NCBI GenBank assembly: GCA_047495785.1
Contig: JBLDXI010000038.1
Location: forward strand, 682,001 to 746,000
Reading direction: 5' to 3'
Source of the DNA: Lepidodermella squamata
Taxonomy: Eukaryota; Animalia; Gastrotricha
Length of the DNA stretch: 64,000 bases
The notes under the pieces were generated by a model. The model was not told the origin of the DNA. It made no database searches and worked only from the letters and a program-made list of their open reading frames with translations. Shown here one piece after another: positions 6,595 to 61,103 of the stretch; the first letter of the stretch is position 1, and each line of letters opens with the position of its first letter. A program made the position numbers and the translations under genes.

Positions 6595-6789
6595 TACAGG
6601 GTAAGAAAATTTCCTATACACAAACATGGAATTAAATTAAAACCAGGTCTCATGCGGCGATGACCTGACATCAGGTGGTGTCATTGCCACTCTTTCCCGC
6701 TACGATAAAGCGGAAGCAACCAGAATTGGAAAGATATTAAATGCGCGAGGCGATACCCGGTATGCAAGATAGAAAGGGCTTTACACATA

Positions 6790-7832: not shown

Positions 7833-7897
7833 TAGTTATAGAAACAAATGCGCAAATATTAAAAAGAAGTGAACACTATAGTGCAGATCGAGCCATT

Positions 7898-12621: not shown

Positions 12622-12974
12622 TACCTAAAAGCGATGGCTTTGTCGTCTAATTGGTGACAGAAACTTTCCACAAAACATGAGCTTGAAGTTGAATTTTTGA
12701 GTGAAAAAAGCTATTTTGGCTGGTCGTGGTTCGAAACTACGACCAATTAGACTATTGCATGATTAATTTGACTTATTAAACATTTTACGTTTGATTTTAC
12801 GATCGTCGAAGTCCTCCTGTTCTTTCCCAAGGGGGATAGCCAATCGGAATGTGGAATAGTTTAGGGCCAGTGGGTCGATTTTCAACCCAACTACCCACAT
12901 TTCTGCCGAATGCCGGAATACCTGTGACAAGCGAAACGAGCTTATCTGACAGTATTTTTTCCGGAATATCTTTT

Positions 12975-13340
12975 AGCGGAACCAAATTTACAGTGAGCGG
13001 AACCTAATTTGCTGTTGCGGAACCAAATATGCTGTAGCGGAACCAAATTTGCTTTTTGCGGAACCAAAGTCGAAATATGCCAAGAGTCATTTTTTGAATA
13101 TTTCTAAGAATTTCAGGCTAAGCATGAATTCTGAATTGAACACCGCGTCTTATAGAGAATGTTGCGCTGAATTCATTAGTGAATTTTCTAGAATTATTGT
13201 GGCCAATTTCGACCTGCAAATAATATCCAAAAATCACTTTCAGGCTACTAGAAAATTCCAAAATTTGGTTCCGCTAGCAGCAAATTTGGTTCCGCTACAG
13301 CATATTTGGTTCCGCTCACCGTATATTTGGTTCCGCTAAC
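12975..13340. repeat. Foldback-type MITE with arms of ~21-bp tandem units
   Basis: Five GCGGAACC(A/T)AAT units on the left and four ATTTGGTTCCGCT units on the right, in inverted orientation. Confidence 0.8.
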
Positions 13341-13929
13341 AGGAGGATCCTATTTTTTCGAGTGAGAGTCTAATAATTAAAGGCATAATTTTGACGAATA
13401 ATGGTCCCGAATCACTAAAATTTTGATTAAACATCAGTTTCCGAGCAAGGTATGACAATGGTCTCTGCCTGCCGTTGAAGATGGCACTGGTGTTAATGAT
13501 CAGAGAATTTTACAGGTTTAATTTTACGGTTCTTAAAAACGGGAAAATAGCGAATTTCCGACTTGTCAAAGGCGAGAGCGATTGGAAATCCACGTTGCTT
13601 ATAAAAAGTGGGAAATGTGTCAATCAACTCGACTTCCATCACACATCGCTCATGGTATTTATTCATAGTAAAAAATCCGAGATGGCTAATCGCAAGCGAA
13701 ATATGGGCACTTTTTGCTTGCTTTCAGTTGCAAAACTATTCTAGCAGGAATTGTATCAACTTCTCGCAAAATTAATTTAGCAAAATTAGCGAGAGTTTCC
13801 ACCCTTAACATTCTATTCTTTATAGGATTATGTACGAAAATGCCACGAAAATGAATCACGATACGAAATGCCATGTATAAACTAACACTTACCTAATCAG
13901 CATCTGCATTATTTTTCTTATCTGCTTAG

Positions 13930-17900: not shown

Positions 17901-18485
17901 TAATGATACGTAAATCATTGGTTTTGTGAGCATCATTATCATCATGATAATAAGTGAAACTAAGGGGAAATGGCTGAAAGAGATTTACGTTAGAGTAAAA
18001 AGAACCTCAAGAGCGATCGGATATGATTGGATCATCAAATCTTTCTTTCTGATTTCTCTATGCTGTTTGATATGCCGCCCTAGTCGAACAGTATTCTGAG
18101 CTTTCCGTCGGCATCAGTCCAGTACTCTTAAGGTTCTCATAGACCTTGCATCGTTGGTTTCTCTGACGGCGCAATTCACCTGTCATCCATGGAACATGTT
18201 ACACACTTCGCTGTTTCTTTTGCGGGGCGCAAACAGATCGAAATCCAAGTGAAGTCTCAGAAGTCGCATGAAGCAAATATCAACCGATCGAAAAATTGAA
18301 TACTTGAGTAAAAGAAGGCGACGAAGACTAGTCACAGAGCGATTGATAACAAATTGTCGACAACGAAAGGCCTAAATAGTCGACCGATTCACTGGCGACG
18401 ACAGATACAACTGCGCCCATGTCGACCAGCACGAAACAGAACAAATACGGTGCGACAGTAACATTGGTGTATAGGTTATCGAGCT

Positions 18486-18818
18486 GGTTGTGTGCGAAAA
18501 GAGCAAGCGAAATAAGAGCAATGACATAAGAGCTAAACGAAATAAGAGCAACGAGATAAGACTTGTTTTTTTTCGTTGAACAGACAAGTGAATCTCGACC
18601 CTTTAAGTAGCTCGAATTGCTGTTTAACCGCTCCACTAATCACTTGATAATGATGAGGAAAAATATATGATCGCGTGCCATTATTTTTTTGTGATTTATC
18701 ATTAATAATTGCTCTTTCGTCGTTCTGCTCTTATCTCGTTGCTCTTATTTCGTTTTGCTCTTATGTCATTGCTCTCATATCATTGCTCTTATATCGCTTG
18801 CTCTTTTCGCACACAACC
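18486..18818. mobile_element. MITE with long repeat-built TIRs and an 8-bp TSD (Merlin- or Mutator-like)
   Basis: ATCGAGCT-GGTTGTGTGCGAAAAGAGCAAGCGA...TCGCTTGCTCTTTTCGCACACAACC-ATCGAGCT; internal ATAAGAGC repeats. Confidence 0.88.
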
Positions 18819-18830
18819 ATCGAGCTGTGT

Positions 18831-26300: not shown

Positions 26301-26809
26301 AAATATTTTGGAGCAGTAATTTTCAACTAAGTTCATATCAAGCGTAAGATAAAATCCTGAATTTCATTCTTATGAAAAAATGTCACAATAACAGGTGTTG
26401 CCGAGGAGGAGTTCAAAATAATAATACATACAAATATAAGTACCACCTTCTATATAACTTCTCCAGGCAAGAAGCGAATACTCTAGGCGTCAAACGCGCA
26501 TTTTATTCATTCGTAGTGAAATATACGAGATGACTAATCGCAAAGAAAATATTACCGCGTGTTGCTTGTTTACCGGTGTTTTTCATTGCTTTCAGTTGCA
26601 AACTATTTGAGGTTGAATTTGATTGTGTAAACCTTTTTTGCGTAAACGTCCCGGTTGAGCGCCTTTTTAGCCTTTTTACCTTTGCAACCGGTGGCGTGGT
26701 CGCATCATTTGAGAACGACATTCTCGAAGAGGCCGTTGGCTCCATTCGTGGCTCAAAGAGCCACCTTATTCAATTCTTAAATAAATTGTGTCTCTCATTT
26801 CAACTTTTA

Positions 26810-27533
26810 AGGCTCGTATAAACGGGCAAATATTTTGTCAAACATTGACTTCAAACATGGATGTTTGATAAAAATGTTTGAAATGCATTTACACGAACAA
26901 ACTTGTTTGTCAAACATTGGAAAAGGTGAAAGGTCACTTCTTGAGGCTTCAAACATTTGTTTGTCAAACTTTCATTTACACGTTCAAACAATGTTTGCAA
27001 GAAAACTAGCAAAATGTATGCAAATCATCAAGAAAATGGCATAATTTATGCAAATTAATAAGATAATTTGTTTAATTTATGCAAATTAGGAGAAAAATGA
27101 CATAAACGGGTAGAATGCTTTTACAATTTTGACCGCTGTTATTTGATTTTTTTTCCTTGCCGCATGACCCTAGCAATTTAAGAATCAATGTGATCAAATT
27201 CTATCCATTTTTTTAAGAAGCACATGAAAAGTTGCGCAGATGTCGTCCCGGCTGGCAACTCCGCAGCAGCCACAGCGCCAAATGTTTGCATGTTTGTCAA
27301 ACAAAATCGCCTCGCACAGTGATTTTGTTTGAAGGCGTTTTCAACACGCCTCTCAAACATTTTCTTTCAAACACGTGCATTTAGACGGGCAAACATGTTT
27401 GAAAGCCGTGTTGGTCCCAACAATGTTTGAACCAAAAGTTTGAACGTGTAAATGCAATGTTTGAAGCCGTTGTTTGGCAAACAATGTTTGAGGTCCATGT
27501 TTGGCAAACATGTTTGCCCGTTTATACGAGCCT
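26810..27533. mobile_element. PIF/Harbinger-type MITE
   Basis: TTA-AGGCTCGTATAAACGGGCAAA...TTTGCCCGTTTATACGAGCCT-TTA; many internal CAAACA/TGTTTG motifs. Confidence 0.9.
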
Positions 27534-28534
27534 TTACTCGCGAATCTTACGTGAAGACTTTGAAATTGTATGAGCACTAGAAAAAGCTAAATAAAGTTAA
27601 TTCAAGTGAATAAATAAAATCTATTAAAATTCGATTAATCTATCAGATTATAATCGAGGATTCGTTAAAATCTAGATTGATTTATAGTCGAATCTAATCG
27701 AATCGAATCTATTGACAACACTACTCGCGTCTCATCTGAACTGAACTGAAGGTTCATAATAACAATAAAGCGAATAATGTGGACCCCCAGCCTTTGCCTC
27801 AGCCCGGCCCTAGTTGCGCACAGCACTCAATACCTGGTGTTGAAAACGTTCATTTTTCACTACACAGAACTCAAAACGCGACCCAATGGTTTACTACATT
27901 AGCTCATTATGGCAGAGGTTATAGGGTCACGTGACCGAAGAAACAAATCAGGTAACTGATTGAGATAGCAATCTCGCCGTGTAGCAAAATTAAAATAATG
28001 GCAAAGCATGGAAACAAGTTGAAAACACGGGTTGCAAAAAAGCGCTGAAATAGGCTGGTTACGAAAATTTGATTTGCAAAAAATCCACCTCAATAATTAT
28101 CAAGACTTTTTGTAAACAAAAATTGCATTGAGCTGTCACTCTGGTTAAGCTGATCTCCATGACCATATCAGAAAACTCAACGCTGATTTGGTTTTATAAC
28201 TCACGTGAAGTAATCGATCATAACGGCGGCCCCGACGTAATGTTCTTCTGATCAAGACAGGACAATCAAGTTTACTCCAGCTTAAATAAAAAATGATTTT
28301 AGCAGAAGTACATTAATTTTAGTCACAACAACCCACCTGTAAAAACTTGAAATCAGTTCAAGTCATGAATTGCGATGTTTTTAGTTTCTCGGGGTTACCT
28401 CGGAGGCAATCTTCACATGCGAAGACGCAATTGTTGAAATGCTCACGCATGCCTTGCGAACGTGGCTTGAGACGAGATTTACGGTACGAATTGCCCGCGC
28501 CATCGCCGCAGCTCGAGAATCGAGATGGTGACCT

Positions 28535-41960: not shown

Positions 41961-42797
41961 TCATACTTTGAGGAACATACCAGGGTCGAGCTCAGCCATG
42001 CAGTTGATCAAATCATGGCCATCCGCCCAGAACGATGCATTGCATTTCAAAGTGGGCTCGTCGTCTGAAAACTCAGGCGTATTCATGTGCTTTTCGATAA
42101 CGGAATGAAGTGTAAAACCACTTCGAGCGAAAACGTGGTGTTTCTTCGAAGGAAGTTGCACTGCGGCACACCAATCGTTCCAACCATCACCGACATACCA
42201 AACCTCGGGCTCGCCAAAACTTTCAAACTCTTGCATCCAATTTGCAATCTCAGAACCTGAAATTCGAAAGAAATTCTGGTTCTGTTCGATTAATTCCCGC
42301 AAAAAGTAACCTTTGCATAGATTGGTATTGCATCGTTTAGAAGGGCATGTTCCTGCTGTGGCTCTTTCCGATAAACTATCAACAGTGCTTAGCTTCAAAT
42401 GTCCATGCTCGTCGAATTCCGCGTGATTAGTCACAATTGATGCGAAGTATTTCTGCAAACCATTTGCTTCTAACGATGTCTCGATGAAAAATTTATTCGC
42501 ATCCGACAGGATCATCAACTTGTGATCTGGCAATGAACCCAGTTTCCGAATCAACTCCGGGATACCGGCGATGAATGGCAGCGATCCAAGGGCCTTTCGC
42601 AAATCTTCTTGTTTCACGGAGTGTTTCTTATGAAGTTCGTCCAACAGTTCGTTCAATTGGTGAATCCACAGTCCTTTGTAATCCTTCCGAGGGCTTCGGC
42701 CGCCAAGCAAAGGAAAAATTGAGTCGCTATCGACATCAATCAGCGTGTAATCAAAATCGAATATAACAAGGCGTTTGCAGAAATTTTCTGAACTCAT
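41961..42797 (-). CDS. PHOSPHO-like HAD phosphatase paralogue B; intron 42257-42310 (54 nt, in frame, stop-free)
   Basis: DFDYT, LSDAN, NLCKG|SEI, GDGWND; GT..TTTCAG intron at the same position as in D and E. Confidence 0.92.
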   Translation of the reverse strand: MSSENFCKRLVIFDFDYTLIDVDSDSIFPLLGGRSPRKDYKGLWIHQLNELLDELHKKHSVKQEDLRKALGSLPFIAGIPELIRKLGSLPDHKLMILSDANKFFIETSLEANGLQKYFASIVTNHAEFDEHGHLKLSTVDSLSERATAGTCPSKRCNTNLCKGYFLRELIEQNQNFFRISGSEIANWMQEFESFGEPEVWYVGDGWNDWCAAVQLPSKKHHVFARSGFTLHSVIEKHMNTPEFSDDEPTLKCNASFWADGHDLINCMAELDPGMFLKV

Positions 42798-42979
42798 AAC
42801 TTCAAATATTCTAGAAAAGAAGAGTTAATAAATTCAGATAAATTTATCACAACTAAAGCACCGGTGCATTCAAAACAATATCCATAAAATATTTTAGGAA
42901 GTCTTGAGTGAGATCGCATCCATTTTTGAGGAAGCGGCTAGAATAACAATAAAAATACAGCTAGCACAGATTTGAAATT

Positions 42980-43753
42980 CTAGTTAGGTAAACAAGATTC
43001 GTCAATTTTAGCCATTCTTTTGGCCAACTCGTGACCATCTTTCCAAAACGAGGTACTGCAGCGGATTATTGACGAGCTCTTCGATCGTTTTTGAAGCATA
43101 GTTTCAAGAGCGTAACCTGATCGAGCGAAGACAAAATGCCGCTTTGAGGGTAATTGGACCGCAGCACAGTAATCGTTCCAACCATCGCCAACAAACCAAA
43201 CGTCAACATCAGCACCCAGCTCCGCCTTCAAACTATCGATTATGTGTTGAATTTCAGAGCCTTTGCACAGGTTATCGGAACATTTGCGAGTCGGGCAGGT
43301 CCCGGCTTTGGCACGAGTCGACTGTTCGTGGCCTGGTCGCAACTTCAAACGGCCATTTTCATCGAATTCTGCATGGTTCGTGATAATAGCGCGGAAATAC
43401 TTGCGAAGATCATGAGCACTCAGTAGAGTATCGATGAAAAGTGTATTGGCATCGGACATTATTATCAAATGTTGATCTGGCACTTGACCCAGACGTCGTA
43501 TTCAGTCGGGCATGCCTTCGACAAACGGTAGTTGTAGAACGGCACGACTGAAATCTGCCTCTTTTACTTTATATTTCGAATGAAGTCTTTCGAACAGGAC
43601 GTTGGTGTGATCAAGCCACGATTTGTTGCCACGTGGCAGGGTTTCTTCAATATCACCATTTGTCAACATCGGCATGACTTCAAAGTAGCAATTGCAGTCG
43701 ATCAGTGTGTTGTCAAAATCGAATATAACCACTCTTTTCAACGACATTTTCAA
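42980..43753 (-). pseudogene. PHOSPHO-like paralogue C, intronless, with a single in-frame TGA at 43502-43504
   Basis: The two track ORFs are in the same frame (GAC TGA ATA CGA CGT CTG GGT CAA GTG); TGA aligns to Leu of GIPELIRKLG in the paralogues; DFDNT, SDAN and GDGWND are intact. Confidence 0.85.
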
Positions 43754-43828
43754 TAAAATCTAGAAATGTCAAAATAAGCTAATTATTCTCTAGAATAAGA
43801 GGCCATGACAATAGAAAGGGAAGGGAAA

Positions 43829-44669
43829 CTAGTTTTCGTTCAATTCAGGGTCAAGTTTGGCCATGCACTCTAACAGCTGGTGCCCGTCGTCCCAAAACGA
43901 GGCATTGCACTTCAAGTAAGGCTCGCTACAATCAGTATTTTCTCGCATAGTTATCATTTTATGCAACTGATAGCCTTTTCTAGCAAAAACATGGTGCTTA
44001 GTCGAGGGTAATTGAATAGCAGCGCACCAGTCATTCCAACCGTCACCAACGTACCAAATTTCAGGCTCGCCAATTTTCTCATACTCCTGCAATAAGCTAT
44101 CGACTTCTGAGCCTGATGAGAATAACATCGCTATAAATAAAGACTTTCGAAGATTGCTGGAGCAAACCTTTGCAAAGATTATCCGGGCATTCGCGAGTTT
44201 GACATATCCCGGCTCTAGCTCGCTTTTGCATCTCAGGAACCGGGCTCAGAATCAAATGACCATTGATGTCAAACTCCGCATGATTTGACAAGATGCGCGA
44301 GAAATATTTCAGTAAACCATTCGACTCCAGTGCAGTTTCAATGAAGTACTTGTTAGCATCTGAAAGCACCATCAAACGATTTTCTGATTGACTGCCAAGT
44401 TTCCTAATCAGTGCAGGGATTCCAGGAATGAGAGGCAATTTCTTCAATGCGGCGTCATAGTCTTCCTTCCCGACTTGATGGTTGCCGTGAAGTTCTTTCA
44501 ATGCCTTATTTACCACGAGAAGCCAAGATCCTCCAGTCCAAGCCCCCTTGAACAAATTTTCTCTAGCTAGATCTGACAAAATTGAATGGCTGTCAATGTT
44601 GGTGAGGGTGTGATCGAAATCGAAAATAACCAGACGCTTGCAAATGTTTGATAACCGTTTGGCAGCCAT
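43829..44669 (-). CDS. PHOSPHO-like paralogue D; intron 44113-44167
   Basis: DFDHT, LSDAN, CPDNLCKG|SEV, GDGWND; splicing restores the frame. Confidence 0.92.
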
Positions 44670-44924
44670 ATCAATCGAATATATTTGTAATATCGACTAT
44701 AATTAAATTAATATATTAAATACCAACTAATTATGAGTATTGTTGAAAGCGTGCTGCAGAAGATTCGAGCATAAAATGAATCAGCATAGTAAAATTCACG
44801 ATTTCTGATTTAACATGAAAGAATTGTAAAACAAAAGAAACCCGGCACCAGAGGCAAAAATACCCAAAAGATCCCAGTTTAAAGCTAACGGCACAGTTTT
44901 CGGAATAATAATGACAACTGGAGA

Positions 44925-45793
44925 TCAAGATTTCGGAAGAGCTAATTTAGGGTCCAATTCGGCCATGATAGCGGCAAGTTCATAACCGTCGCTCCACAGC
45001 GAGATGTTGCATTTCAGTTGTTGTCGAGACCGCGAAGCTTCGCGCTTGAGCAAATCATCGAGTTCAAATCCTCGACGAGCGAAAATTCTGTGACGATCGG
45101 AGGGCAAACTAAGAGCGGCACAGTAGTCGTTTGTTCCATCCCCTACATACCAAATATCGGGTTCGTTGCCTAAACCATAATTTTCGATGATATGGTGAAC
45201 TTCAGATCCTGAAGAAGAAAAATACAGCGTTTTAAACTGAGTGTCTGCTCGTAAATATTGTAATGACGGAAATTACCTTTGCAAATGTGACGTAAACAAA
45301 GTTTAGAAAAGCATGAGCCTGAAGTCGCACGTGATGCCTGTTCTGGGACTGGTATCATCCGCATACAGCCACTCTCGTCAAAAAATCCTTGATTCGCGAT
45401 AATTTGACTGAAAAACTTTCGCAAATTCTTGCTTTCAAGAGCTTGATCAATGAAGAAACCATTGGCATCTGAAAGCACCATTAACTCGTGATCGTTCTGT
45501 TTCCCCAGCGTTTCAATCACTTGGGAAATTCCGGCAGTGAACGGCAATGTTTTCAGCGTGTTACAAATTTCGGTCTTGCCAATGGGATACTTTGATTTCA
45601 AATACTTGAAAATTTCATTTGAATAGTCCAACCAAGTTCCCGAGCTATATTCAACTGGTACATCTTCTCCATTTGTTATTGTCTCGATCACGTGGTAATT
45701 TGTGAAAGCATCGGCTAGAGTGTGGTCGAAGTCGAAAATTACGAGGCGTCTAGGCTTAGAAAACACCTCTTTCATCAAATTCAAAAAATCCAT
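44925..45793 (-). CDS. PHOSPHO-like paralogue E; intron 45209-45276
   Basis: DFDHT, LSDAN, HICKG|SEVHHII..WYVGDGTNDYC; splicing joins the 207-aa and 60-aa ORFs. Confidence 0.92.
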
Positions 45794-46215: not shown

Positions 46216-47418
46216 TTAAGATTGCGACTGGTCCTTCGGGCTCGGAGACGACTCACCCGCAGCGTTGAGGGCAGTGGATTCGGACTCCGGCGGGCTGCTC
46301 GATAGCGCAGTTTGAGATGACTGAGACGCGCCACCGATCGTTGGAATGTTAACGTCATCACTTTGGCTAGCCCCGTTGCTACCCGTGTCCTTTTCGTCTT
46401 TCTTGGGTAACTCCTTCTCTTTGCTGCCTTCCTTCGAGCTGGCATCTGAGCTTGACGCCGCAGTGTTTGACTCAGCCGCAGCTTTTGCGTTTTCAGCCGC
46501 AGTCTTCGCGGCGGCTGCAGCTGCTGCTGCTGCCGCTGCGTTCTTAGCGTTATTTGCACTGGCCAAAGCCGAAAGAGAAGCAGATGAATTCGAATTGTAA
46601 GAGGTGAGAGAGGGCGGTAAAGAATTCGAGTAAGAAGCAGGGCTCAAGCCATACAGTTGACCACAGTACATCGAATCATCAATATTACCCTCGAAAAACA
46701 GTTGTTTGAGTTTGAAAAACGCTTCACCGGTCATCAATGAGTCGGAACCGGCGGTATGTTGAGGACCCTTACGCTGGATTTCCAAATTGTTCGCGAGTTC
46801 CTGCAAACCACCACGCAACGTACGACAGCTCTTCATGATAAACTTGGCATCGTACAAGAACGGAAAGTAGATTCGCAAGAGCTCGAAGAACTCTTCATCT
46901 GAATCAGGCAGCCGTTGATTGGTCATGATTTTAATCATATAACCAAAATCATAGCCACTGTGAAACGAAAGCCATTTCACCCGCTTAGAAAGAACTAGCC
47001 CAGAGGTGATCAGTAGTTCACAGAAATCATCTGGATGAATACCAGAATGAGCAAGCCGAGGAAATTGAATACCACTGTTTTCCAGGAGTGCTACTGATTG
47101 CACACTGCTCATGTCCGAGGCTTGATTGAAGAAAAAATTGAACTGCCAAGAACAAACAGGTGAAGGGGTTTCTCCGTTTTCGTTAAAAAAAGTTAGGCCG
47201 ATTTGAATGACTTTTGTCAAATCAACGTTGACTTTCATGTTGTAGTATTGATATTCTGCAGCGCTTTTGAATGTACCATACGGCTTGGCAACACAACCGG
47301 GAAATTCAGTATCCATAGCAATGTATGGATAGTCATTCATGATACGACGGATATTTCGAAACTCTTGATACAAATTTTCGTACCACACATCAACGATTGT
47401 GTTGGGGCTATAGGTCAT
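46216..47418 (-). CDS. CNOT7: CCR4-NOT deadenylase subunit CAF1 (CNOT7/8) with an Ala/Ser-rich C-terminal extension; coding region intronless
   Basis: DEDD motifs AMDTEFPG, FHSGYDFGY, GGLQELA, GPQHTAGSDSL. Confidence 0.95.
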   Translation of the reverse strand: MTYSPNTIVDVWYENLYQEFRNIRRIMNDYPYIAMDTEFPGCVAKPYGTFKSAAEYQYYNMKVNVDLTKVIQIGLTFFNENGETPSPVCSWQFNFFFNQASDMSSVQSVALLENSGIQFPRLAHSGIHPDDFCELLITSGLVLSKRVKWLSFHSGYDFGYMIKIMTNQRLPDSDEEFFELLRIYFPFLYDAKFIMKSCRTLRGGLQELANNLEIQRKGPQHTAGSDSLMTGEAFFKLKQLFFEGNIDDSMYCGQLYGLSPASYSNSLPPSLTSYNSNSSASLSALASANNAKNAAAAAAAAAAAKTAAENAKAAAESNTAASSSDASSKEGSKEKELPKKDEKDTGSNGASQSDDVNIPTIGGASQSSQTALSSSPPESESTALNAAGESSPSPKDQSQS

Positions 47419-50400
47419 TTTTTAAAATGATTTTCAGCTTTTATTAAAAAATTCTAAAAGAAGAAATAAATCAAATAATCTCTCAGGTAGAAAACAGTTA
47501 CAGATAACAAGATGAGTTGGTAGCCATAGATGGATAAATTCAATCATTATTCACTAAAGATTACTAAAATAGATCTGAAGATTGCTTTAAGAACTAAGGC
47601 ATAACGCATACATGCCGACCAATTAACGGTCAACGTTCAGCTAGTAAGGGATGTAAATCTACAACTTAAATCTTGAATAAATCTAGAGCAAAAGTAACGT
47701 TGCTTGCCAATTACTCTTTTATCAGTGCTACAAGGCAAATAAAACATAAGCGACAACCTAAATGTGAAGGGTATAGGGTATAGTGGCAGGTGCCAGAAGA
47801 ATGTAGATAGCCAATTGAGTGAACGAGACAAGGAACGCTAGAGACAAATAAAACAGGTCAAAATCTAAACTTAGAAGTTTACTGCGAGCATACGCATACA
47901 TCAACGATTAACGGAAACGGGAAACGATTGGGCTAGGGGCTTGTTTGCATATTCACCGTAGCCATGCCAGCATTGAAGTCCTATATGCACTCTCGGCTTT
48001 AGCAACTTAAAACTTAGGGTGAGGTGAAAGATGCAAGAAGCTCGAAACTCGAAACTCAGCTTCGATCTCATAAGTCGGGCGGGGGCTACTGTCAAAACTT
48101 CATTATTTCGTTTTTGCGCTAAGATTTATTTTTCATACATGTTTATATTAAAATTATACAGAAAATAGACGTGTTAACTTTTAAAAAGCTTTACATTTTA
48201 CGGTAATTAATTTTTATAAATTCTCTGGATATCGAGGGTGTGGGAGCTCGTCATTTCCCGGGATCACCTAGGTCGTTGAAGTTAGCCAGAACCGGTGTGT
48301 ACCGAACTTAGCCAGAACGTGAAGCCGGTGAGCTATGGTCTCAAACCCGACTTGGCTGAAGATAGCTGATCGAGCTGAGTTGGCTAATGGAAAGAATTAC
48401 TCAAAAAGTCGTTTCCAAACAAATGATATGTCAGGTTAAAGTGGGAGACAGGGTACCCGGCACGCGGCGAGCACTTTAAACCTGTTTTTCTCGAGTTAGA
48501 AGCGTTTTAAAAATAAAATAAAATAATATTTATATATTATTCGGCGAGATTATTCGGGCATTGCCTCTTGTAAATAATTCTCCAAACTAGTCTTTTGGTA
48601 GCTTTCTTGCTACGACGGCGTTTGTGGGCTTCGCTGAGTGAGTGGAAAAGCCACCTGGGCGCTGATGCCTGGGCCCTGGAGAAACAGTCAGCAATAACTA
48701 GAGTACCAGGGGTAGGGATTTCAATTAAGTAGTTAGTAAACCAGTTCAAACTTTCCTAGAGCGTAAGCTCGCGATTTTCTCACAAGCTCCGCCTTATGGC
48801 GAAAGCTTGAGTCCGTCAGGGCGAGGAGAAATCGTAATTCCTGATCCTGATCCTGATCCTGAGATAATTTTTTTGAGCTATAATTTATTCAATTAGCTCA
48901 GATTGCATTTTTCGCCGTTTTTCGCCCGACATTTGTTGCTAGGGCGACGTTTTGAGGTTGCATACCGAGTTTTTAATGCTCAGGTCAGCGGCTAAGACAG
49001 CATTCAGTCCTAATTAATAGGAGCAATATGAATCTTGCATTTTGCAGACGTCTTCCATAGAAAATCATGATATCACGCTCTCTCATCCTGTTTTACTTGT
49101 GTTTTGGTTGATTATATGGAAAGTTCAACACTTTTACTATATTAGCAGCTTTACTCCGACGTCATTTGGCTTACAGCCAGAACCTATGGTGGTAAACCAG
49201 AGCATTTATCTGAAGTTCTGAAGACTATAAGAGCATTATAAGCTCTTTCTTTATTCACCTGTATATTTTTTCTTGATTTCATGTAGCCAAAAACATTGCA
49301 GCCAGCTAGAAAACAGTCGATTGCCTACTATCGTTTTTGCTACTGCAAATTCGCCCATCCGGAACCTTAGCTATGTAGCCGGAACGCTTAGCTGACTTCC
49401 TAGACACTTATTTTGCAACGCTAGTGCAGATTTTATCTATTCCAATGCTTAGCGCTGTTATTAGGCACGCCGGAACGACGGGTTAGACCTGGTTTGTTGC
49501 AGGATGTCCTCAAACAGTTAGCGTTGAACAATCGTCCATCCAGACCCTTAGCTGGTGAGCCGGAACGTTTAGCTGAAGCTGTCAGCACTTGAACTACTTT
49601 ATTTTATCAAAATTGATACTTGTATGCGCTGAATTATGTGTTTTGCTGCTTCTAAATCGCAGGCCGCAGCTACCAAATGCTCAAACATGTGATGTCAGCT
49701 AGCTCAGCCTTTAGCTCGGTAGCTCAAAAGTCTGAATGAAATTATTATCACTTTTCCCTATGATCTGCATCTTTGTATGTATTTTAAAGCGTAAAACGCG
49801 CTGAATGATAGAGTTGACCGGGTATATAACTCCGTCAGTTAGCTGAACTTGATGCTGATGAGCGAGCAGCATTTCTATATATCAAAATTGAAGTCTCATG
49901 TGATTTTAGACGTTAGACGTTAGAATTGAAACAAGAATTGCGTTGATTGATTCAATTTTCAGCTTCTTAGAGCTTTTAGAGTTTTAAAAGAGTTTGTGTT
50001 GGTATCACATTAATTTATCTTCATAATTGGTCGATGGATGCACACGATGACTGCCAGGTATGCAGTTTCTAGATGTTTTTGAATTTCTTATTTATTTATT
50101 TTACTCAGAGCATAATATGAACCGGATGCTCTCTATCATTGGCGTTGATCAAAGCTTGTTTTTTTCCTTCGCGTTGCCGCATGAAGAAGAAATCAGCAAA
50201 AAAAGAAATTTCAGGTATCAACAATTATTGCTCAATTTAATACGGCTTTATTCTGCCCTGCTTAGACTTCTGCTAATCACCAGTTAACGATGCGGCGAAA
50301 ATACTTGAATAGAGGTAACGGCAAACTTGATGTCGAGTTTTGATTTCATTTTTCTGCATTTTCAGGTCTCATTTTCGAATTTGACATCCTTGATGTCTGC

Positions 50401-50617
50401 CGCCTAACATCGGCAATAAGCTGACTTTTTAACGGAAACTTATCGTATTTACCGCCATTTTAATTCGAGCTTTTGACTGCATTCCTGGTCATATGTTTCA
50501 ATTTCCCAATAAAGCGTATGAAAAGAACACTTTTGTTACGAAAAATGCAAATTTATTTGATCGGCACAGTAAGAATTGGCGTAAAAAATCATGCAAATTA
50601 ATGAGGTGGCACTGGGA

Positions 50618-53600
50618 TTAACCTCCCTTTTTGTAGGCTTTCACTGGTTTTATAGGTTGTGGCGTGGCGATATCGGATTGCTCACGTTGCTTTTTCCGGC
50701 TCATGCGACCAGGTTGAATAGGCGTGTCTTCTGGCGCCTGTTCGATCTCCTCAAGCGGCAACTCGACATCAATGTATCTGTACTCTACCCCCGCCAGTTC
50801 GATGAGAGGGCCGATAGCAGCCGGCTGGTTTGAATCATCACCGCGCCGCCGAACGCTGTAGTAATGTTGGCCGGTGATGTCGATTACCAAGTGACGGTAC
50901 TCCGCGACCTCAGCATTTGCGATGCGAAACTATTCAAGAAACATTATTAGTCAAGTCAGGCGTAAAAATCTCGATGCACTCACAACAACAGCGGTGAGAT
51001 CGGGGGCATAAACTACCAGGTTGGTCCTGTTGGGCAACGACAAGGCCTTCACTTCATTATGGTCTGCGAAATTACCACGGCTTGTGCGAACACGCTCAAC
51101 ATGTTCGTCGAATTGGATGAAATTCTCGACCTCGTCGACATCGAATAGGTCTGCATTTAAGAACATCTCGGGGTATTCGCTTGGAAATTGGCACACAGCT
51201 CGCGATATTGCATGAAGGAGGCTTCGTCTCCATTGTCCTGATCAGCATAAGCACGATACATGCAACTTCTGAAAATGGAAAATGAAATGAAAAATGTAAA
51301 ACGATGAAATTATCAGCTAAAGTACCCATCAGCACCAACAATTCGAAGTTCGAATTTTTTCTTGGAAAGTAAGTTGGCGATTTCGAACAATCCGTCAGGT
51401 AGGCCTGGAATCGCTTTCAGCTTTTTCGAATAAGCATGGTCAGCTGTTGGTTTTTCGATTTTCTCGTCCTTATCACCCTTTTTCTTTTCCACTTCTCCAA
51501 TTAGCTCCACCATTTTCTCATAGACGCCTTCGTAATAACGGGATTTGGTCTTCGGCTTTGACTTCTGCCACTGAGCAGTCAGCTTTTCGGTCTCCTCCAC
51601 CGTTAAATCTTCGATTCGAGACGGTTTCGGCGCGGCTGGCTTGGTCGTATCGTTTTTTGTCGGCTGCTCGTTTCCGACTTCGATTTCAGACCTGATTACG
51701 TTGCGGTGCTTGGTTTGAAAGGCCGTGGAGTCAGTTAAAACTTTGAAGAACACTAGCATGGTGAGGCTGGCATTTTCGCGCAAGATCTCATACACTTTGC
51801 TTAGACACAAATGCAGACGGTGATTGAAAGCTGAATTCTTGCGCTGATTAAACATGCTTTCCTGCGCGGCATTCGCGTAACGTGTCGCTCCGTCCGGTTG
51901 TCGAAATGTCCGACCAGGCGACGCAGCCCCGGTTTTAGATGGGTACCGAATTCCCGCGCAAACGAAGGGCAACAAGGGGGCAAAAACGTCGCGGATATGC
52001 TCGAATGCTACAGGTAAGTAAAGCGGGTTAGCCTCCTGCGACTGGAGCGATTGTTGATTGGGATTCGATAGACCATGCTGTTCACGCAATTCATCAATTT
52101 TTTGGCTACACAGGATAGCAAACGGCGAAATTTTCTTCAGCGGACCAGCCTCAGTGGAGATGAAAGTTTCCTGCGTGTCCGGCAACTCCCCGTCTTCTTC
52201 AGGCTGCGATTGAGCAATAAACTCATCGGAAACCAGTTTGTCGTAATCGACCGTGTCAGGTTTATCGAATTCTGCAATTTTCTGTTTCAGGCTGTCGAGG
52301 GCGCCGGGGACGATAAAATTCAAGCCAAATACGAGATAAATCAGTCCATAAATTTCGATAGCCTCGTCTAAGGTGGTGGCGTTTTGGAGAGCGCCGAAAG
52401 CGGTTAGAGCAATCTTTTTGACGTGTTTGGCAGATTTGGGAGATTTTCGCGCCAAAAATCGTGCCATTGCTGCCATGACATGCGAACAACACAGGTAAAT
52501 CAGGGTGATTAGCTTCAGTTGTTCGTTGCTACAACCGTTTTGCAGGAAATGGAGCAGTTTGGATAAGAAGTCCAACAAATTTGATCGGTTGAAAGCCTTG
52601 ATTATGCCATGCATGGAGGCGTAGCAAAAATCGATGATAATAGCACGTGGTCGCTGAACAGACTGGCCATTTTTCTTCGTTATGGCATCCCACCACATGC
52701 AGAAAAACGCATCGAATTCGTTGGCAGTGTGGGAGGTGGTGATAAGCTCGGCGCAGGCGAACGTTGGCAGGTTTGTTTCTTTCCCGTTAGCGCGAACATT
52801 AACGCTCTCAGACCACGTCAACGTATAATAAAGCGATTTATTATAGTCAGGATCGAACTTCCAAAGCGATCCGGTTCCGTCAAACTGCATGATAGGCCGA
52901 GGAAAGGGTCTAGTGGCTATTTTGCCGTAGGCCTCGAGCATCTCGTCCGTGAATAGGACCAAATGGAACCGGTCGCCGTCGCCAATATCTCGAATGTAAG
53001 GTTTTCCCTCGCTTTGCTCCTCTTTCCGACGCAACAGCATGTCAATGGTCTTGTCAGGATGTAGTCGATCTTTCAGGCTCATTTCGCTATGTGCTTTCTG
53101 ATAAGTGGACAACGCGTGACTTTCGCCAAATCGCTCGGCCATCAGATTTTTCACCTGCTCGAATTTCATTAGTAAGCTATGAATCAAATAATTATCAATA
53201 GCTAATTATACCTTATCAGGCTGTTCCGTTTCCAACAATTTTTTGGCTTCTAGTCTGATAGCTCCTTTCAGCGGACGCCGGATCGGATCTTCAGGTGGGT
53301 GGTTAGGCTCTCCAATACGCTGAAAGTGAAATTCCTTGTGACACAGCTTTTCCTCCTCCTCAAAGTCAGCCGTGATGATGAATTTTTCCGGACACTTGGA
53401 AACCGAACAATGCGCATTTATAACGATTGCCGGATCCAATGTTTTGCGAATTGATTGATTTGAGACTGAAATGGCGCATATTTGCCGCAACTTCTCTTCT
53501 AGCAGCTGATCATCTCGACCCCCTTGTTCAACTTCGAGCTTGGCTGTATGGCGCATGTATTCCTGCCAGCTTCGATTTAACACGTGGCCGTAAGTCTCGC

Positions 53601-54001
53601 CCAGTTCGAGAATGGTTGCCGTTTTTTTCCCGGTTTTCTTCATTTTGCTTGGATAGAAAGTCTGCCACCCTATCTTCCTCAACAACAATGCTGATCGTCG
53701 TCACGGCTGGGTTATTTGCTTGCTCGGTTGATTCGGACGGCATTGATTCAGCTGCGGTCACATCGCTGGACGACCGCTCGATTACGATCAAATGATTGGC
53801 TTTCAGGCGATTGTAGATGTGTTTACGATTTCTTTTCGTATTGGCATCTTTGCCCCAACCACGACCGATCAAGCGGCCCACGCATGACTCAGCCCTGCTG
53901 TGACCATCGCCAGCCGGGATCTTGTCCAAATTTTGCGAGGAAAGCCAGCGTTTAGCTTTGTCGATTATAATTGGGTCAGTATCTTTAATTTCGACTGGCA
54001 T
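50618..54001 (-). CDS. MULE transposase with a C-terminal OTU protease domain (~1070 aa; introns 53155-53211, 51269-51325, 50930-50983; 1-nt frameshifts near 53625 and 51180)
   Basis: CSVSKC...H..H zinc module; DDE core FDGTGS / IIIDF / LCCSH (CxxH) / NAAQESMFN; splicing gives VGADGSCMYRAYA...NFADHNEVKALS..NLVVY...GQHYYSV, the OTU Cys and His boxes. Confidence 0.85.
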
Positions 54002-54146
54002 CTAAAGGAAAATCAATATTTTCGAAAATGGCTCGTCATATTTTCTCAAAGCTCGATCAATCAAGAATCATACATTTTCTCGGTAATATCATTCGCCTCA
54101 TCTCACTCATTTTTTCAACACAAAAACCATTTTTCAGGTTAACTTT

Positions 54147-54758
54147 TCATTCCCTTCTTTCGCGCTTCCGCTTCTGAGCTTCTGAAAACTGCCGCATACG
54201 ATCTAGATCCTGTTGCGAAGCCTTAAGGTGGTCGATTGAAACGCTGATCTCACAGCCAGGACAAGTATCGTCCCATTTCAACGTACGGCCGCAACGGTAG
54301 CATTTTTGTGCTTCTTCGTCGACGAAATCTGGCGACGGCGGGTTTGCATGGACTCTTATACCCGGTCCAAGTTCGAAGGACTCCTATTGGAACATCGGCT
54401 TCTATTGAATACCCATCGACCAATTGTTAGAACTCACGCTAAAGGAAAAATCCGATTTGGTCGGACTAATAGGCTGCGCAGGACCGATAGGATTCGTAGG
54501 ACTGCTGGGCTGCGTAGGTTCGATTGTATTTGAACCTACGGTCTTTTCGATCATGCCGCTGGCTGCTAGGCGATTGTACACCTGTTTTCTGTTCTTCTTT
54601 CTGTTAAAATTTGGTCCAAATGTCTCAGCAATTAACCGGCCAACAAACGACTGGGGCCTTGTGTGGCCATCGCCAGCCGGTATTTTTTCCGGATTTCGAG
54701 AATCGAGCCAGCTTTTAGCTAGCTTAATGAACTCAGCATCGAGTATAAAAGTTTGCAT
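54147..54758 (-). CDS. Transposon accessory protein (~185 aa): transposase-paralogous N-domain, Pro-rich linker and C4 zinc finger; intron 54384-54437
   Basis: AKSWLDSRNPEKIPAGDGHTRPQSFVGRLI..KKNRKQVYNRL vs transposase AKRWLSSQNLDKIPAGDGHSRAESCVGRLI..KRNRKHIYNRL; AGC|GTGAGT..AATAG|GAG splice leads to KCYRCGRTLKWDDTCPGC..QKRKRERRE*. Confidence 0.75.
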
Positions 54759-54966
54759 GACTATTAAAAAAGAAGTTGATATCGATATAACTATATCAGA
54801 ACGTCTGGATCTTTTGAAACAACCATATGAAGATGAAATATTCGAAAAAAAACAACTTCTGCTAGCAATTTTTTCTCGTAATGCGTCCGCCTTAAGAATA
54901 AAGCCGAAAGCAAAAATGTTCAACAAAATGTGTCTTTTTTCGGGGCTGGAATTATTTCGGATAAAC

Positions 54967-57900
54967 CAAATCTGTCGCCCAGAATTAAATAAGTGCGCCC
55001 CTTTTCAAACGTCGCCCCAAAATTAAATAAGTGCGCACACATAGTAAATAACGTCGCCCCTGTTGCGTAATCGCCGCCCACAAAATTTAAATGTGCGCCC
55101 CAAGTGCGCGCCTTAAAATAAAACAGCGGTCAATGCGTGAATGCTGGTTTTCTCGGCTTGAATGCTAGATCACCTTTTTTTTTACCAAACATGCGAATAG
55201 TTTAATGGAAGCGGAAGATAGCGGCCCGTCGTCGACGCATCTTTCAGTTCAGATTACTTGAAATTAGTCCTAAGGCTGAAATGGTATTTTCTGATGAGAA
55301 ATCTTACAACCGATCGTTAGGGCTAATGGCTAACTGCATTTTTAAGACCAGGGAATTGAGACCCGTCAAGCGGTCTCCGCCCTATAGATATATCTCCACC
55401 TTCATAGTCACTATAGAAGACAGCGGCTGACGAATAATTATGATACACCTCGTTTCAAATGAAATTTGAAAATAAGACGGGGCCAAAATCGCTTGACGTT
55501 TCTCAGTTATTCTGGGGGATAGCTCGTCATATAGCATACGTATAGATAATAGAAAATAATATCGCATATTGCTGATTTCTTGAAAAAAAAAATCCTAGGA
55601 TAAGTTGTAAGCTGTTGATTTGTTGTTGCAGCTGTAGGTAGCGCGTTTATGGCGACCCAGTTAATGACCGGACACGGTCCGGCTCATCACGCAGCTAGTA
55701 GCTAAACCTTGGAGGAATAGAGATGGAGTGAGCACTGCCTCGTATCAACGCGCACTATCGTCTGACAAAGGCCGAGTGGCGCAGCAGGGCGCCCGCTCGC
55801 CTCGATCACGTGACACACTTTAACAGCCAATCAGCTCTCTAGCGTCCCTAGTTTTTGCTATGTAACACACGCATTTACGAAAACATAGCTTTATTTAAAA
55901 AGGCGCCGAGTCACTAATCATTTCTTCAGAAGGCGAACGCTTGGCACCTTTAGCACGTTTAAAATCGCTGTTCAGACCAGCGCGAAGATTAATAGAAGTA
56001 GGATTATTATTGTCGCGATCTAATAAAGTTATTCTTTTAGATAAAATATTTTGCAAAATTTTCACAATTGGCTGTACAAATTCCAGATTAGGTGGATAAG
56101 AAGGATTTTTCACAATTAAAGCCTTGTGCAAAATATCTGCGAACTCTTTTTGATACCAGATTTGGCGGTAGGGCGCAGAAATCGCCTCGCGAACAAGAGC
56201 TAGTACGTGCACGTTCGGCTTGACAAGGCCGCCGCGGCTCAGCCATACTTCGGGTTGACTGTTGTCCGGCTCCAGTTTCAGCTGGCGGGTGATATAACCG
56301 GCGACGCTAGCCGTAGAGCGATCGTCGGTGACGAGTTCGGCTGGCAATTCGACGCGCAAAAGCGGCTCGATTCGATTATCGATTTTCGAGAGTTGTTTCA
56401 GTTTTCGAGCAGTAGCGATTTTGAGGCTCTTGATTTTGTGCCGTTGCACATTCGCGCCTTTCGAAATGCCGAAATTTGACCCAACGTACCGTAGAACCGC
56501 GATTCGCTGAAGCAGCCGAGCCATCGTAGGGTGACGAGCTCCGCCCAACCCACACCGGACTTGGCTGAATAGCTGTTCTAGAGGGCCGCTGTTGAAGCGT
56601 GCCGTTAAGACGTATTCAACACCTTCGCCCAGCAACTTCTCCGTCAAACGAACGATGGCTTCGGTCGAAGTGAGAATGCCGTCGAAGGTTTGGGTCGACA
56701 ACTTGTTCTCCGGATTTTTCTGGGCACCCTGTCGGTCGCGGAGCCAGGTGCAGAAATCTCGGAGCCAGGTCAAGCGAGGGTCATTGACGCTGCGAAACGG
56801 GGCGAGGTTGTTGTTGCGCTTGCCAAGAAACCCGTAGCAGGAATTGATGTTGAGGATGTCGAACCACTTGTTGATCATCGAAATCACTGGCGCCATGGCT
56901 TGGGCATGTTGATAAAGAGGATGACCGGGCTGGAACTCGGATCGGCAGGCCTGAGCCATGGATTCGCTGAGAACTTCGGCCGCTCGAGCAACGCTCATTT
57001 TCAGCGAGTTATTCGATAGAATTTTCCGGATGTTGGTCGGATTGAATTTCTTATAGAGTCGCAAAATTCGGCGCGAATCGATGTTGAGGATGGCGTCGAA
57101 AACTTGCCACAGAAACCGCGAGCCATGGTCGTCTAATTCCCAAGATTTCTTTGTTAGATTGTTGCGAAGAGTCTGAAAAATTAATAATATTTTATTAATT
57201 CAAATTTCAAAATAATCCAACAAAATTCGGGAAAATTTAAAAAAAATTGAGAAATATTTTGAAATATTACCTATACCTTGAGCAGATGAGGAACGTCGAA
57301 AATGACCTCGAGAGCTTCGCCGCGGGCGTTTAGAATCGGAATCGACCGGAATCGACCGGAAATGACCCAACGCAAATGGCCAACGGCGACTCGACAAACC
57401 GCAACATGATGCACAGCGCCTTGGTTGCGGCCTCGTCCGGGTTGTCAGCAGCTCGGCCTACAACCATACCGTCGCCTACGACTTCGGTTTTGCCGTTGAC
57501 TGAGACCTCGTCGATTTCGACACCGAAAAAGAGATCAACGTGGCCGGCGAATTACCGGTTATCCGGATTGGATGACTCATGACGCCGGATAACAACCACA
57601 TCCGAGTGTTATCGGTGGATATCGATGTATATTCGCCTTCCAGCCCGCTGTTCCGGTCTTTGAACGCGCCTCTGGCCTGCTAGCCTTCAAGCTGATATTA
57701 ATCGTGATATTCACCCATGATATTCACCCGAATATTACATCATATTATCCTGTAATATTTCGGGTTTTTGTTGGATAGACCTGCATTATTCTCAAGCTTG
57801 TAAGGTAGGTCGCTGCAATTAAACCGGTCAATAACCTTAATATTATGATAATTGATCTATGTAGGATCTTGGCTTTCCGCGACATATAAGCACAAAAGTT

Positions 57901-58155
57901 GAAGTAAAGCAGTCAAAATATGGTCAACATATCCTTATCCCGTCCTGAAAACCATGCGAAAAAAATCGGCGACTCAAGCTTTAAATGGGGCGACATTATT
58001 TATTTTAAGGCGGCGTATTTCAAAATGCGCGCGGCTTAGCGTGTTGCAGCGCGGCGTTGCGTGAACGTGGGCGCGGATTACGCAACCAGCGCGCACTTGT
58101 TTATTAAAGGGCGCAAAACTGGGGCGCACTTATTTAATTTTGGGCGACAGATTTG
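54967..58155 (-). mobile_element. P-superfamily element nested inside the MULE
   Basis: 35-bp TIR CAAATCTGTCGCCCAGAATTAAATAAGTGCGCCCC / GGGGCGCACTTATTTAATTTTGGGCGACAGATTTG (1 mismatch), CA..TG ends, GCGCCC subterminal repeats; no TSD seen. Confidence 0.88.
55895..57700 (-). pseudogene. P/THAP9-like transposase: 3' exon intact (55895-57172), intron 57173-57276, 5' part deleted and disrupted
   Basis: IDEVSV, FDVPHLLK|TLRNN, KMSVARAAEVLS, INKWFDILN, YVLTARFNSGPLEQLFSQVR, VAGYI. Confidence 0.88.
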
Positions 58156-60189
58156 TACCCACCCGAATTATTTTGTTTCCTCCTTCCGATTCTCGGCAAT
58201 TTCTTCCTTCGCAGGAACGTAATGGCGAGTGCAGCTGTATTTGAACTCAATAACACAAAAAAGACAAAACCGGAATCAAGTTAACGTTTTATTTTATTCA
58301 TCGTGAAATAGCGAAAGTGAATACGAACATAAATCGAAAATAAACATAAAATGTGATCAATAACGTGCAATAGTTACAGTGCCAAACAAAAATTTGAAGC
58401 GATTCGGAGAAAAATTCATACCTACAAACCTCAATACTTTTGCAGTAATAATAACGGCAATTGAAATATGCTAAAATGGAAAACAGTTAACAAGAAAATA
58501 GAAATCTGCATTAGGGCCGTTTGAAGTCATTTTGAAATCCATTTTCTAGGAGGTCGGGTATGCGGTCTAGAAGCCGAGATGTGAATCTGTAAGAACATAC
58601 AATTTATTCGAATATCTGCGAAAAAAACGGGAACACGAACCGCTCAAGTTACGGAATTTCTATCAACAGCACTCACGATCATTTCTCATCGTCAAGGTGT
58701 TCCTTGTGCCACTGAAAATTCATAGCTCAGAGCAGGAACCTAGAATGGTGCATCAGTTTCAGTGATAACATAAACGAAATATTTCAGGAATTTCAGGAAA
58801 TTTACAAACCTCTGCTTTCTAACAGGTCCATGGCGTCTTATTCCCAGCGATAATCGAGATATCTAGATAACAGACGGTAACAATTGAGCTCAAACAAAAT
58901 CACAAAAAAAACCTATTGATGGCATGAAACTTGAAAGCTGATAGGCAACAGTGCGATTTCCCGTCATCAAGGGCTATTCTTATACAATCGGGCTGTTGTC
59001 ATACAATTCTCTTACAGTTGAATTTCATGTTCCAGGGGAACGCGGATGTAATAACTAGAAGAGATAAAATGCAACAAATTAGGTATTGATTTAACATTTA
59101 ACATCTTCTTCTCCGATTAGGTAAAAATATGTATCCCATGGCGCCAGTTAATCATCAACAACGATGCACCATCAAAAAGCAAGTTGTCTAGCTGACTTCC
59201 TCGATAACTTGCTCCTCCGGCTTCGTGCCTTCGGTCGGGAAGCGTGTGGGCGGCGGATAAATTGGCAGGTAGATGATAGGGGGCTGATGAAAATTGTCGG
59301 GTTTGATCTCGCCTGTTCCGTCCCAGAATAGCAGAATAACGGGTTCAGGCATTATTAAAAATCAATATGGCTATCTATATGTAAGAATCAGAAAAAGGAC
59401 TGAAAAGAAAGTTAACAATAGTGCAGGAAAATATAACTGTTTAGTGATTAGATAGTCTATAGATAACGGTAGCCATAACACGAATTTACGCTCTGAGCTG
59501 TAAAACAATCGGAACGTTAACGAAGATGCATATGTCATATGATGCCTGCAACACTAGTTTTCATCAGAATCAAAACGCCGTGTTGAAGGCGCTGGTAGTA
59601 AGCAGAAAGAGTCGAATGGAGTCGAAAAACCCGAACCAGGCAGGCCTAATGCATTCAAATTATTGAAATTATGCTTGATACTATGTCAAATCAGTCTGGA
59701 TCGCCAGCCATAGGTCTGGCTGACAAAAAACATGTTCGCGTTTCGGGTAAACCCTTTTAACCGCGTCCAAGTTCAAGACACTGGAGTCGGGAAACGCGAA
59801 CTAGACTCCTATACCCAATCAAATTTAACATATTGTGCTACAATATTATCAGCTAAGCGGTCTGGATAGCTAGTTACAGGTCTGGCTGACGAGAAAACAT
59901 GATCGTCGCGAACTATTCGTCGATGTAACTATTCTAGCCCAAGGTGAAGTTCCTGGAGTCTCAAATATCCGAGCCAGACCCTAATAAAAATGTAATATGA
60001 CAAATTATGTAAGAATACTCTTAGCTAAAGGGTCTGGATGACCAGCTAAGCATGTGAGAACTTTGGATACCTCATAAAATGCGAATAAATACGGTCCAGC
60101 CCGCAAGAAGTCGAGATAATCAGACAAAAACCACACTCTGCATAGTGATATCGCGCCGGAAGTAAGGCCGGAACCTAGAATAAGCATCA

Positions 60190-60435
60190 GATATGGCGAC
60201 CTGCGGCTGCAGAGAGGCGTTGAGTTCCTTCTTCTTTCGCTCGCTCTTCGCCTTGATGATGGCGTCGTGTTTGGCCTGTTCGCGTAGGAATTCGAGCGTG
60301 GCTTGCCGGCACGCCTTTGTGGAAGCAGACAGCCTGATCTTCGCTGGTAGCTGGTTCCACCACTGGATGGCCTTGGTTGGGAACGAGCGCTGGCCTGTGG
60401 CCCGTTTAAATCGCCCGCCCAGTCTATTCAAGGTC
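60190..60435 (-). mobile_element. LINE 3' fragment inside the MULE
   Basis: RSFPTKAIQWWNQLPAKIR motif typical of LINE ORF2 C-termini. Confidence 0.65.
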
Positions 60436-60755
60436 GCGAAATAATATAAAAAATATATTTTCTTTCATAACTCAATCAGCTATTATCAGCTAAATATATA
60501 TTTTTTTAAAATATGGTTCTGGCTAATTTCGTTCTGGCTAACTTCAGGCGGATCACCTGACTCATACTTTCCAGCTCCCCTCAGAATCACCGAAACAACT
60601 TACATCTTGCTTCTAAGTAAACCAATTAGTAAACCATCTATTTCTTCATTGAACTTGGTTGAATTGGCTGAACTGCTGAACTGCGTCTACACGTGACTGC
60701 CCTATAAGTGTGCTGGAATGCTTAACGGCATTACGATTTATGAATGAATTCTGTG

Positions 60756-61103
60756 TTTCAAGATGAGTTTTTGGGCTATTAGTAGTTTTTGAAGCTCAAG
60801 TACTCGATCCGTTTTGATCGATATTCAAATTTGCAGCTGTATTTGAACTCAATAACACAAAAAAGACAAAACCGGAATCAAGTTAACGTTTTATTTTATT
60901 CATCGTGAAATAGCGAAAGTGAATACGAACATAAATCGAAAATAAACATAAAATGTGATCAATAACGTGCAATAGTTACAGTGCCAAACAAAAATTTGAA
61001 GCGATTCGGAGAAAAATTCATACCTACAAACCTTTCAAGATGAGTTTTTGGGCTATTAGTAGTTTTTGAAGCTCAAGTACTCGATCCGTTTTGATCGATA
61101 TTC
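60756..61103 (+). repeat. 71-bp direct duplication (60756-60826 / 61033-61103) enclosing a 202-bp copy of 58230-58431
   Basis: Exact sequence matches read directly. Confidence 0.93.

Follow-up and report, generated by a model that had tools for sequence, protein, structure and literature searches.

A very divergent, probably NOF/Rehavkus-type Mutator transposon with an OTU-like C-terminal module, represented by a broken copy in a gastrotrich genome

Background

Proteases that remove ubiquitin or SUMO are carried by many unrelated transposons. A locus in the gastrotrich Lepidodermella squamata offers a further candidate. In a 64,000-nucleotide stretch of contig JBLDXI010000038.1 (positions 682,001 to 746,000, assembly GCA_047495785.1; hereafter the window), a sequence-only reading had proposed that a 624-aa transposase ORF does not end at its stop, but continues through short introns into a hidden OTU deubiquitinase-like domain. 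Here we consider whether the two parts belong to one gene, to what kind of element this gene belongs, what the OTU-like module might do and how far its design departs from those already known.

Results and discussion

Organization of the transposase gene

The transposase gene lies on the minus strand of a region with the characteristics of a small-intron eukaryotic genome, and comprises four exons (Table 1) followed by an AATAAA at 50557. Both introns of the sequence-only reading, one joining RIVGADG to SCMYRAYADQ and the other leading to GQHYYSV, were recovered with GT..AG boundaries and in frame, and the exons have an A+T content of 47-52% as against 63-74% in the introns. The third intron links the zinc-finger exon to the main exon, and an HMM built from homologues only aligns these two exons consecutively, with e-values of 2.7e-9 and 3e-81, respectively. 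On the sequence, the 624-aa ORF continues past its stop as had been claimed, but it does not mark the start of an exon: its TTG lies inside the third intron, and the real exon runs from 53154 to 51326.

The two 1-nt frameshifts that had been reported near 53625 and 51180 are also present in the sequence. By codon usage, the favored frame switches at each break; the signal is weak at break 1 (~4 bits on one side and ~7 on the other) and clear at break 2. Introns that would remove either shift were sought and rejected, since the GT..AG candidates either resemble exons in composition or would take out the Cys-box helix. A programmed frameshift at the A7 run was likewise rejected: the A AAA AAC there has the phase needed for a -1 slip, but the -1 frame stops within a few codons and a +1 change is needed. 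A canonical slippery site accounts for neither break. The gene structure and both frame changes are thus confirmed at the level of the sequence. As assembled, the copy is predicted to be dead and the fusion could not be made from it: at break 1 translation would end ahead of the catalytic core, and at break 2 the OTU domain would be cut after its Cys box.

Upstream of break 1 lies an N-terminal part that we infer to be joined to the transposase. Its domain found no match among the transposase homologues (E > 0.8), and an in-frame ATG with an A at -3 is present at ~53643. Both points would fit a gene model with no first frameshift, in which the ORF from 54001 forms a small gene of its own, paralogous to the gene upstream of it, and the transposase starts at the later ATG. 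Such a model would make the two ORFs share ~115 nt and leave several ATGs upstream, and the preference of codon usage for frame A before the A7 run and for frame B after it would be unexpected; we consider it improbable and retain the joined N-terminus. The C..C..H region that follows represents the N-terminal zinc-finger DNA-binding domain expected of Mutator/MULE transposases, although Pfam did not confirm the type of finger.

Table 1. Features of the element and its genes, in positions of the window
Feature	Position	Strand	Remarks
Whole Mutator-type element	48270..60549	-	12,280 bp; ~9.1 kb without the nested P-like element
Left target-site duplication	48261..48269	no strand	GGATCACCT, 9 bp; 9-mer found only twice in the window
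Right target-site duplication	60550..60558	no strand	GGATCACCT; perfect copy of the left 9-mer
Left terminal repeat	48277..48319	+	16-bp core, its start 7 nt inside the end; TTAGCCAGAAC present twice
Right terminal repeat	60515..60546	-	same 16-bp core, 3 nt in from the end; two motif copies
Left subterminal repeats	49344..49576	+	~180-bp spacing; terminal motif pointing inward
Right subterminal repeats	59617..60050	-	~165-172-bp spacing; inverted relative to the left set
N-terminal part, frame A	53630..54001	-	~80-aa domain 48% identical to upstream small gene, then acidic linker
Break 1, +1 frame change	53620..53630	-	at or near A7 run (~53625)
Exon part, C..C..H zinc-finger-like DNA-binding region	53212..53619	-	kept in homologues; profile E 2.7e-9
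Third intron	53155..53211	-	57 nt, GT-AG, 74% A+T; absent from the sequence-only reading
Main exon	51326..53154	-	RNase H-fold DDE core, charged linker, then OTU Asp (51330-51328)
Main-exon catalytic codons	D from 52881, D 52632, CxxH 52491 and 52482, E 51861	-	
Intron	51269..51325	-	57 nt, GT..AG, 74% A+T; splits Gly codon of D-G-S-C
OTU Cys-box piece	51180..51268	-	candidate for the catalytic Cys, 51264-51262
Break 2, -1 frame change	51175..51196	-	inside OTU domain, near 51180; unshifted frame stops ~51160
OTU middle piece	50984..51179	-	helices, variable loop, strand
Intron	50930..50983	-	54 nt, GTGAGT..AG, 63% A+T; in frame to FRIANAE...GQHYYSV
Last exon	50618..50929	-	OTU His box, His candidate 50866-50864; then low-complexity basic tail
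Second gene inside element	54147..54758	-	two exons, 54-nt intron 54437-54384, open throughout
Nested P-element-like transposon	54958..58165	-	own terminal repeats; 8-bp duplication AATTATTT; TNP-like_GBD E 1.7e-8

The transposase core and its affinities

The main exon is unrecognised by Pfam, and an exhaustive phmmer search with it recovered 393 relatives, the best-scoring of which is 31% identical (E 1e-21). The alignment of these homologues revealed near-invariant DxTG, D, CxxH and NxxxE columns, all of which are intact in the window protein (D94, D177, C224/H227 and E434). The core Cys lies 47 aa after the second D, just beyond the 15-45 aa within which the (C/D)xxH motif is placed in Mutator/MULE transposases (PMC5499845), and we count this RNase H-fold DDE core among them in the broad sense that includes Rehavkus. 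An AlphaFold model of the core, built on the homologue alignment (pLDDT 75), had as its top PDB match ISCth4, a prokaryotic transposase of the IS256 family, which is related to Mutator (VIA Z 12.2, with an rmsd of 5.1 across 250 residues; Foldseek E 8e-4). In a structure search of the ESM Atlas the best named match was the cluster of the NOF-FB 120.7-kDa protein (TM 0.59), with the MULE-Pfam clusters scoring lower (TM 0.38-0.47).

Among accessory and family profiles, the Pfam MULE model PF10551 has no match in the window protein and matches weakly in 2 of the 52 long homologues; a SWIM domain was not detected in the window protein by Pfam. The PHD finger too has no Pfam match there, and is present in 6 of the 52 long homologues, indicating that it is not universal in the clade. 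The relatives, the intact catalytic columns and the structural matches to ISCth4 and the NOF-FB cluster bear out the NOF-FB-type Mutator core that had been proposed, and support its classification as a probable NOF/Rehavkus-type transposase.

The OTU-like tail

The tail was searched exon by exon, as separate pieces. The OTU Asp and Cys (the D-G-x-C box) and the His box occur in order across the in-frame introns. When the 67-aa middle piece alone, which contains neither catalytic box, was used in a language-model search of the ESM Atlas, it retrieved OTU clusters at a score of 0.95 with 206/256 features shared, a score that shuffled proteins attain about once in 100; its ten best family matches all fall within one clan. 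By eye, the same piece follows the OTUD5 pattern of H-x-E-x-x-A and then a V-Y strand. The 31-aa Cys piece gave a weak lead in the direction of OTU, which adds little as it comes from the same tool. No match in Pfam, NCBIfam, PDB or hhalign was found for the separate pieces, misses that are attributable to the pieces being too short and divergent. Searches by tblastn and hhalign with the OTU domains of two homologues were blank or uninformative, and folding the middle piece from its single sequence gave no usable model (pLDDT 52). At the sequence level the earlier identification of an OTU-like tail holds, and with Asp, Cys and His in the expected order we regard an OTU fold as very probable.

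The tail is also probably a ubiquitin-removing protease. In some OTUs an Asp of the Cys loop serves catalysis, and this Asp is present in the window tail. Most OTU enzymes have Asp or Asn two residues after the His, with some exceptions, and here the residue two past the candidate His is Tyr (H-Y-Y), making activity less certain than the fold.

That these exons might be a captured fragment of a host gene or a separate downstream unit, never translated with the transposase, deserves consideration, given that Mutator elements capture host gene fragments (PMC6431247) and that the link between the two parts is made by one predicted intron. This intron is nevertheless in frame and similar in size to the others, the Asp-Gly of the OTU Cys box shares an exon with the DDE core, and two homologues, P0147 and P0141 (residues 297-1009), have the DDE core followed by an OTU at the same place, within one exon. 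Capture or separation is accordingly very improbable, and a single transposase-OTU product remains our reading of the intact gene.

Ends of the element and signs of its age

The chance of a 9-bp duplicate such as GGATCACCT beside both ends of the element is ~0.001, and its length fits the 8-10 bp of Mutator/MULE target-site duplications. The 16-bp terminal cores are inverted to each other and match at 16/16 positions (E 0.001-0.005). The ends are short and asymmetric, with 7 nt outside the core on the left and 3 nt on the right; canonical MULEs of the MuDR type have TIRs >100 bp, in place of which a 16-bp exact core and scattered inverted motifs were found here. Inside these lie 2-3 degenerate subterminal units of ~170-180 bp per end, and the terminal motif is enriched in them and faces inward: CCRGAMC has 8 forward and 0 reverse occurrences in the left arm, against 6 reverse and 2 forward ones in the right. 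Binding and excision by the Muta1 transposase are reinforced by its subterminal repeats (PMC5499845), and with a similar role the repeats seen here would probably be additional binding sites. By analogy with Muta1, the transposase would bind the TTAGCCAGAAC-type motifs at the element ends, excise the element and insert it with a 9-bp stagger. We hold it likely that the whole was once an autonomous Mutator-type transposon of the cut-and-paste kind, belonging to the NOF/Rehavkus group and equipped with an OTU-like C-terminal module.

Whether the breaks exist in the animal bears on the state of this copy. Long-read assemblies typically contain single-base errors in runs of A, and break 1 falls at a homopolymer run; moreover, the duplication is perfect, the catalytic residues and splice sites are intact, and stops occur in frame only where the two shifts cause them. 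These features would suit a gene that is intact in the animal, with one or both frameshifts being assembly errors and the element perhaps still active. Break 2, by contrast, lies outside any long run, the subterminal units are only 70-80% alike, and the insertions described below (a nested P-like element and a 202-bp insert) indicate that the copy has been in place long enough to take two hits. Hence, we consider assembly error an unlikely explanation, and favor a copy that is truly broken.

A second gene, a nested transposon and the neighborhood

The element contains a second gene upstream of the transposase gene. Over its first 80 residues it shares 48% identity with the N-terminal ORF at 54001, and it ends with a CxxC..CxxC zinc ribbon (DZR E 7.6e-4, below the Pfam cut-off) and a basic tail. 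An acceptor-like tract runs right up to the ATG of 54001, with which the donor at 54437 agrees in phase, so that alternative splicing could place two copies of the 80-aa domain in front of the transposase.

The P-like element lies ~200 bp upstream of the start of this small gene; its imperfect terminal repeats start with CGG, and it retains a 389-aa ORF piece with TNP-like domains. A 202-bp sequence is found twice at 100% identity, once inside the Mutator-type element (58230-58431) and once just outside it (60832-61033), where a perfect 71-bp direct repeat stands on either side of it (60756-60826 and 61033-61103). Near the right end, a 103-aa ORF at 60120-60431 on the minus strand has no Pfam or NCBIfam match; its start, FPTKAIQWWNQLP..., is reminiscent of a motif at the C-terminus of LINE reverse-transcriptase ORFs.

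About 850 bp from the left end of the element lies a CAF1/CNOT7-like deadenylase (CAF1 ribonuclease) gene (46216-47418, minus strand), consisting of one intronless 400-aa ORF with an Ala/Ser-rich tail. Four short paralogous genes stand in tandem at 41985-45751, spaced by ~1 kb, and a fifth copy lies 36 kb off, at 5794-6555; their DFDHT motif suggests that they encode HAD-family phosphatases. Further inverted-repeat elements occur at 6788-12623, 10178-10558, 12965-13342, 18485-18819 and 26809-27534, some with internally repetitive arms and nested in one another.

The C-terminal slot in the homologues and its possible function

The C-terminal tail carries a Ulp1 domain in 7 of the 52 long homologues, a USP in 2/52 and an OTU in 2/52, and in the homologous transposases P0081 and P0051 USP and Ulp1 domains occur in tandem at the C-terminus. 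As Ulp1, USP or OTU is found at the same position in these proteins, the slot appears to be kept for a ubiquitin-family protease. The two OTU-bearing relatives are the Brachionus calyciflorus protein CAF0932078.1 (P0141) and the metagenomic P0147. In phylogenetic trees the window protein sits on a long branch and is unplaced. A tree test does not reject the grouping of the three OTU-bearing cores in one clade (p-AU 0.75), and the tree constrained in this way is better by 7.6 lnL, which does not amount to a demonstration of the clade.

A long inverted pair around the Brachionus gene was evaluated as the ends of an element and rejected, as it is without a target duplication. Word-index searches for homologues, scans of metagenome and viral contigs, and tblastn against plasmids were blank or uninformative. 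Three members of the eukaryotic transposase clade (P0153, P0015 and P0016) are labelled Sedimenticola sp. in metagenome bins, and are probably mis-binned animal host DNA.

In intact copies, the tethered OTU would remove ubiquitin, with the transposase itself or proteins at the break as its likeliest substrates, and this removal might protect the transposase from degradation or ease repair. We lean, with some reserve, towards this stripping of ubiquitin from the transposase or break proteins. The same hypothesis exists for the proteases of Ginger, where it dates from 2010 (PMC2836005), and of Helitron elements (PMC9741609). A different proposal, self-processing, comes from the Medicago MULE-OTU fusions (PMC1702500): here too the OTU might cut the long transposase product, or else be a non-catalytic ubiquitin-binding module, and activity could be weak given the unusual residue that follows the His. 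The tails of the homologues are all ubiquitin- or SUMO-family proteases, pointing to a modifier rather than a polyprotein site as the substrate; as these are different protease classes with related substrates, we favor a modifier-removing role, and view self-processing or mere ubiquitin binding as rather unlikely.

A wider generalization can be offered tentatively, as a possibility that we would not presently bet on: the C-terminal slot of NOF/Rehavkus transposases may be exchangeable but obliged to hold an active Ulp1, USP or OTU protease, with the present family being an unpublished OTU-bearing branch shared with rotifers, in which a small partner protein of the same N-terminal domain acts as a built-in regulator. 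If this is true, intact copies in the genome would permit the first direct test of the need for an OTU in transposition. The present copy is broken and so serves to point to such intact sisters; it is not itself the best object for a test.

Comparison with known systems

The closest named counterpart is NOF-FB, whose 120.7-kDa protein is the best structural match and shares the DxTG, D, CxxH and NxxxE motifs, but proteins of its cluster typically have a Ulp1 (45%) or PHD (34%) where the window protein has an OTU tail. Rehavkus elements are described with a 9-bp TSD, a TIR of 26-400 bp, a minisatellite before the 3' TIR, a PHD finger and a single ORF (PMC6446971). The 9-bp TSD, short terminal repeats and subterminal tandem repeats of the window element fit this description; in contrast, its exact TIR core is only 16 bp and asymmetrically placed, it has a second gene and no PHD finger was found in it. 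No paper reporting an OTU in the NOF/Rehavkus group was found in a search that covered mainly the open-access literature.

The combination itself has precedents. MULE transposases of Medicago truncatula with a C-terminal OTU protease were described by Babu et al. 2006 (PMC1702500), and their order of WRKY-GCM1-type finger, Mutator DDE core and OTU is the design seen here. They are of a plant, SWIM-bearing MULE type, whereas the window protein has an animal NOF-type core with no detected SWIM, and the OTU was probably acquired independently in the two. Brachionus CAF0932078.1 and P0147 belong to the same transposase clade as the window protein, with the DDE core followed by an OTU, but are ~18% identical overall in the alignment and have OTU domains unsplit by introns. 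The sequence-only reading had suggested that this could be an undescribed family, a novelty that an already catalogued architecture would refute. Such an architecture is largely provided by the Medicago fusions and by the same-clade rotifer protein, whose layout is already in NCBI/UniRef; the specific family is undescribed, with its best-scoring match 31% identical. The novelty is hence modest: by its sequence, the element is a new, very divergent family of known design, present here as a broken copy.

More distant parallels are found in Ginger1, which carries OTU or Ulp1, in Mutators with Ulp1 and in Helitrons with OTU (PMC2836005). Ginger1 and Helentrons resemble the window element in attaching an OTU or Ulp1 module to a transposon protein, with the same functional hypothesis, and Ginger1 also contains introns, but their mobilising enzymes are unrelated (a Gypsy-like integrase and a Rep-helicase, respectively). 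The VTD domains borne by Helitrons are active deubiquitinases in vitro, and as of 2022 transposon OTUs were without any assay (PMC9741609). To these systems the present element adds a divergent animal NOF/Rehavkus family whose relatives display three protease classes at the same position.
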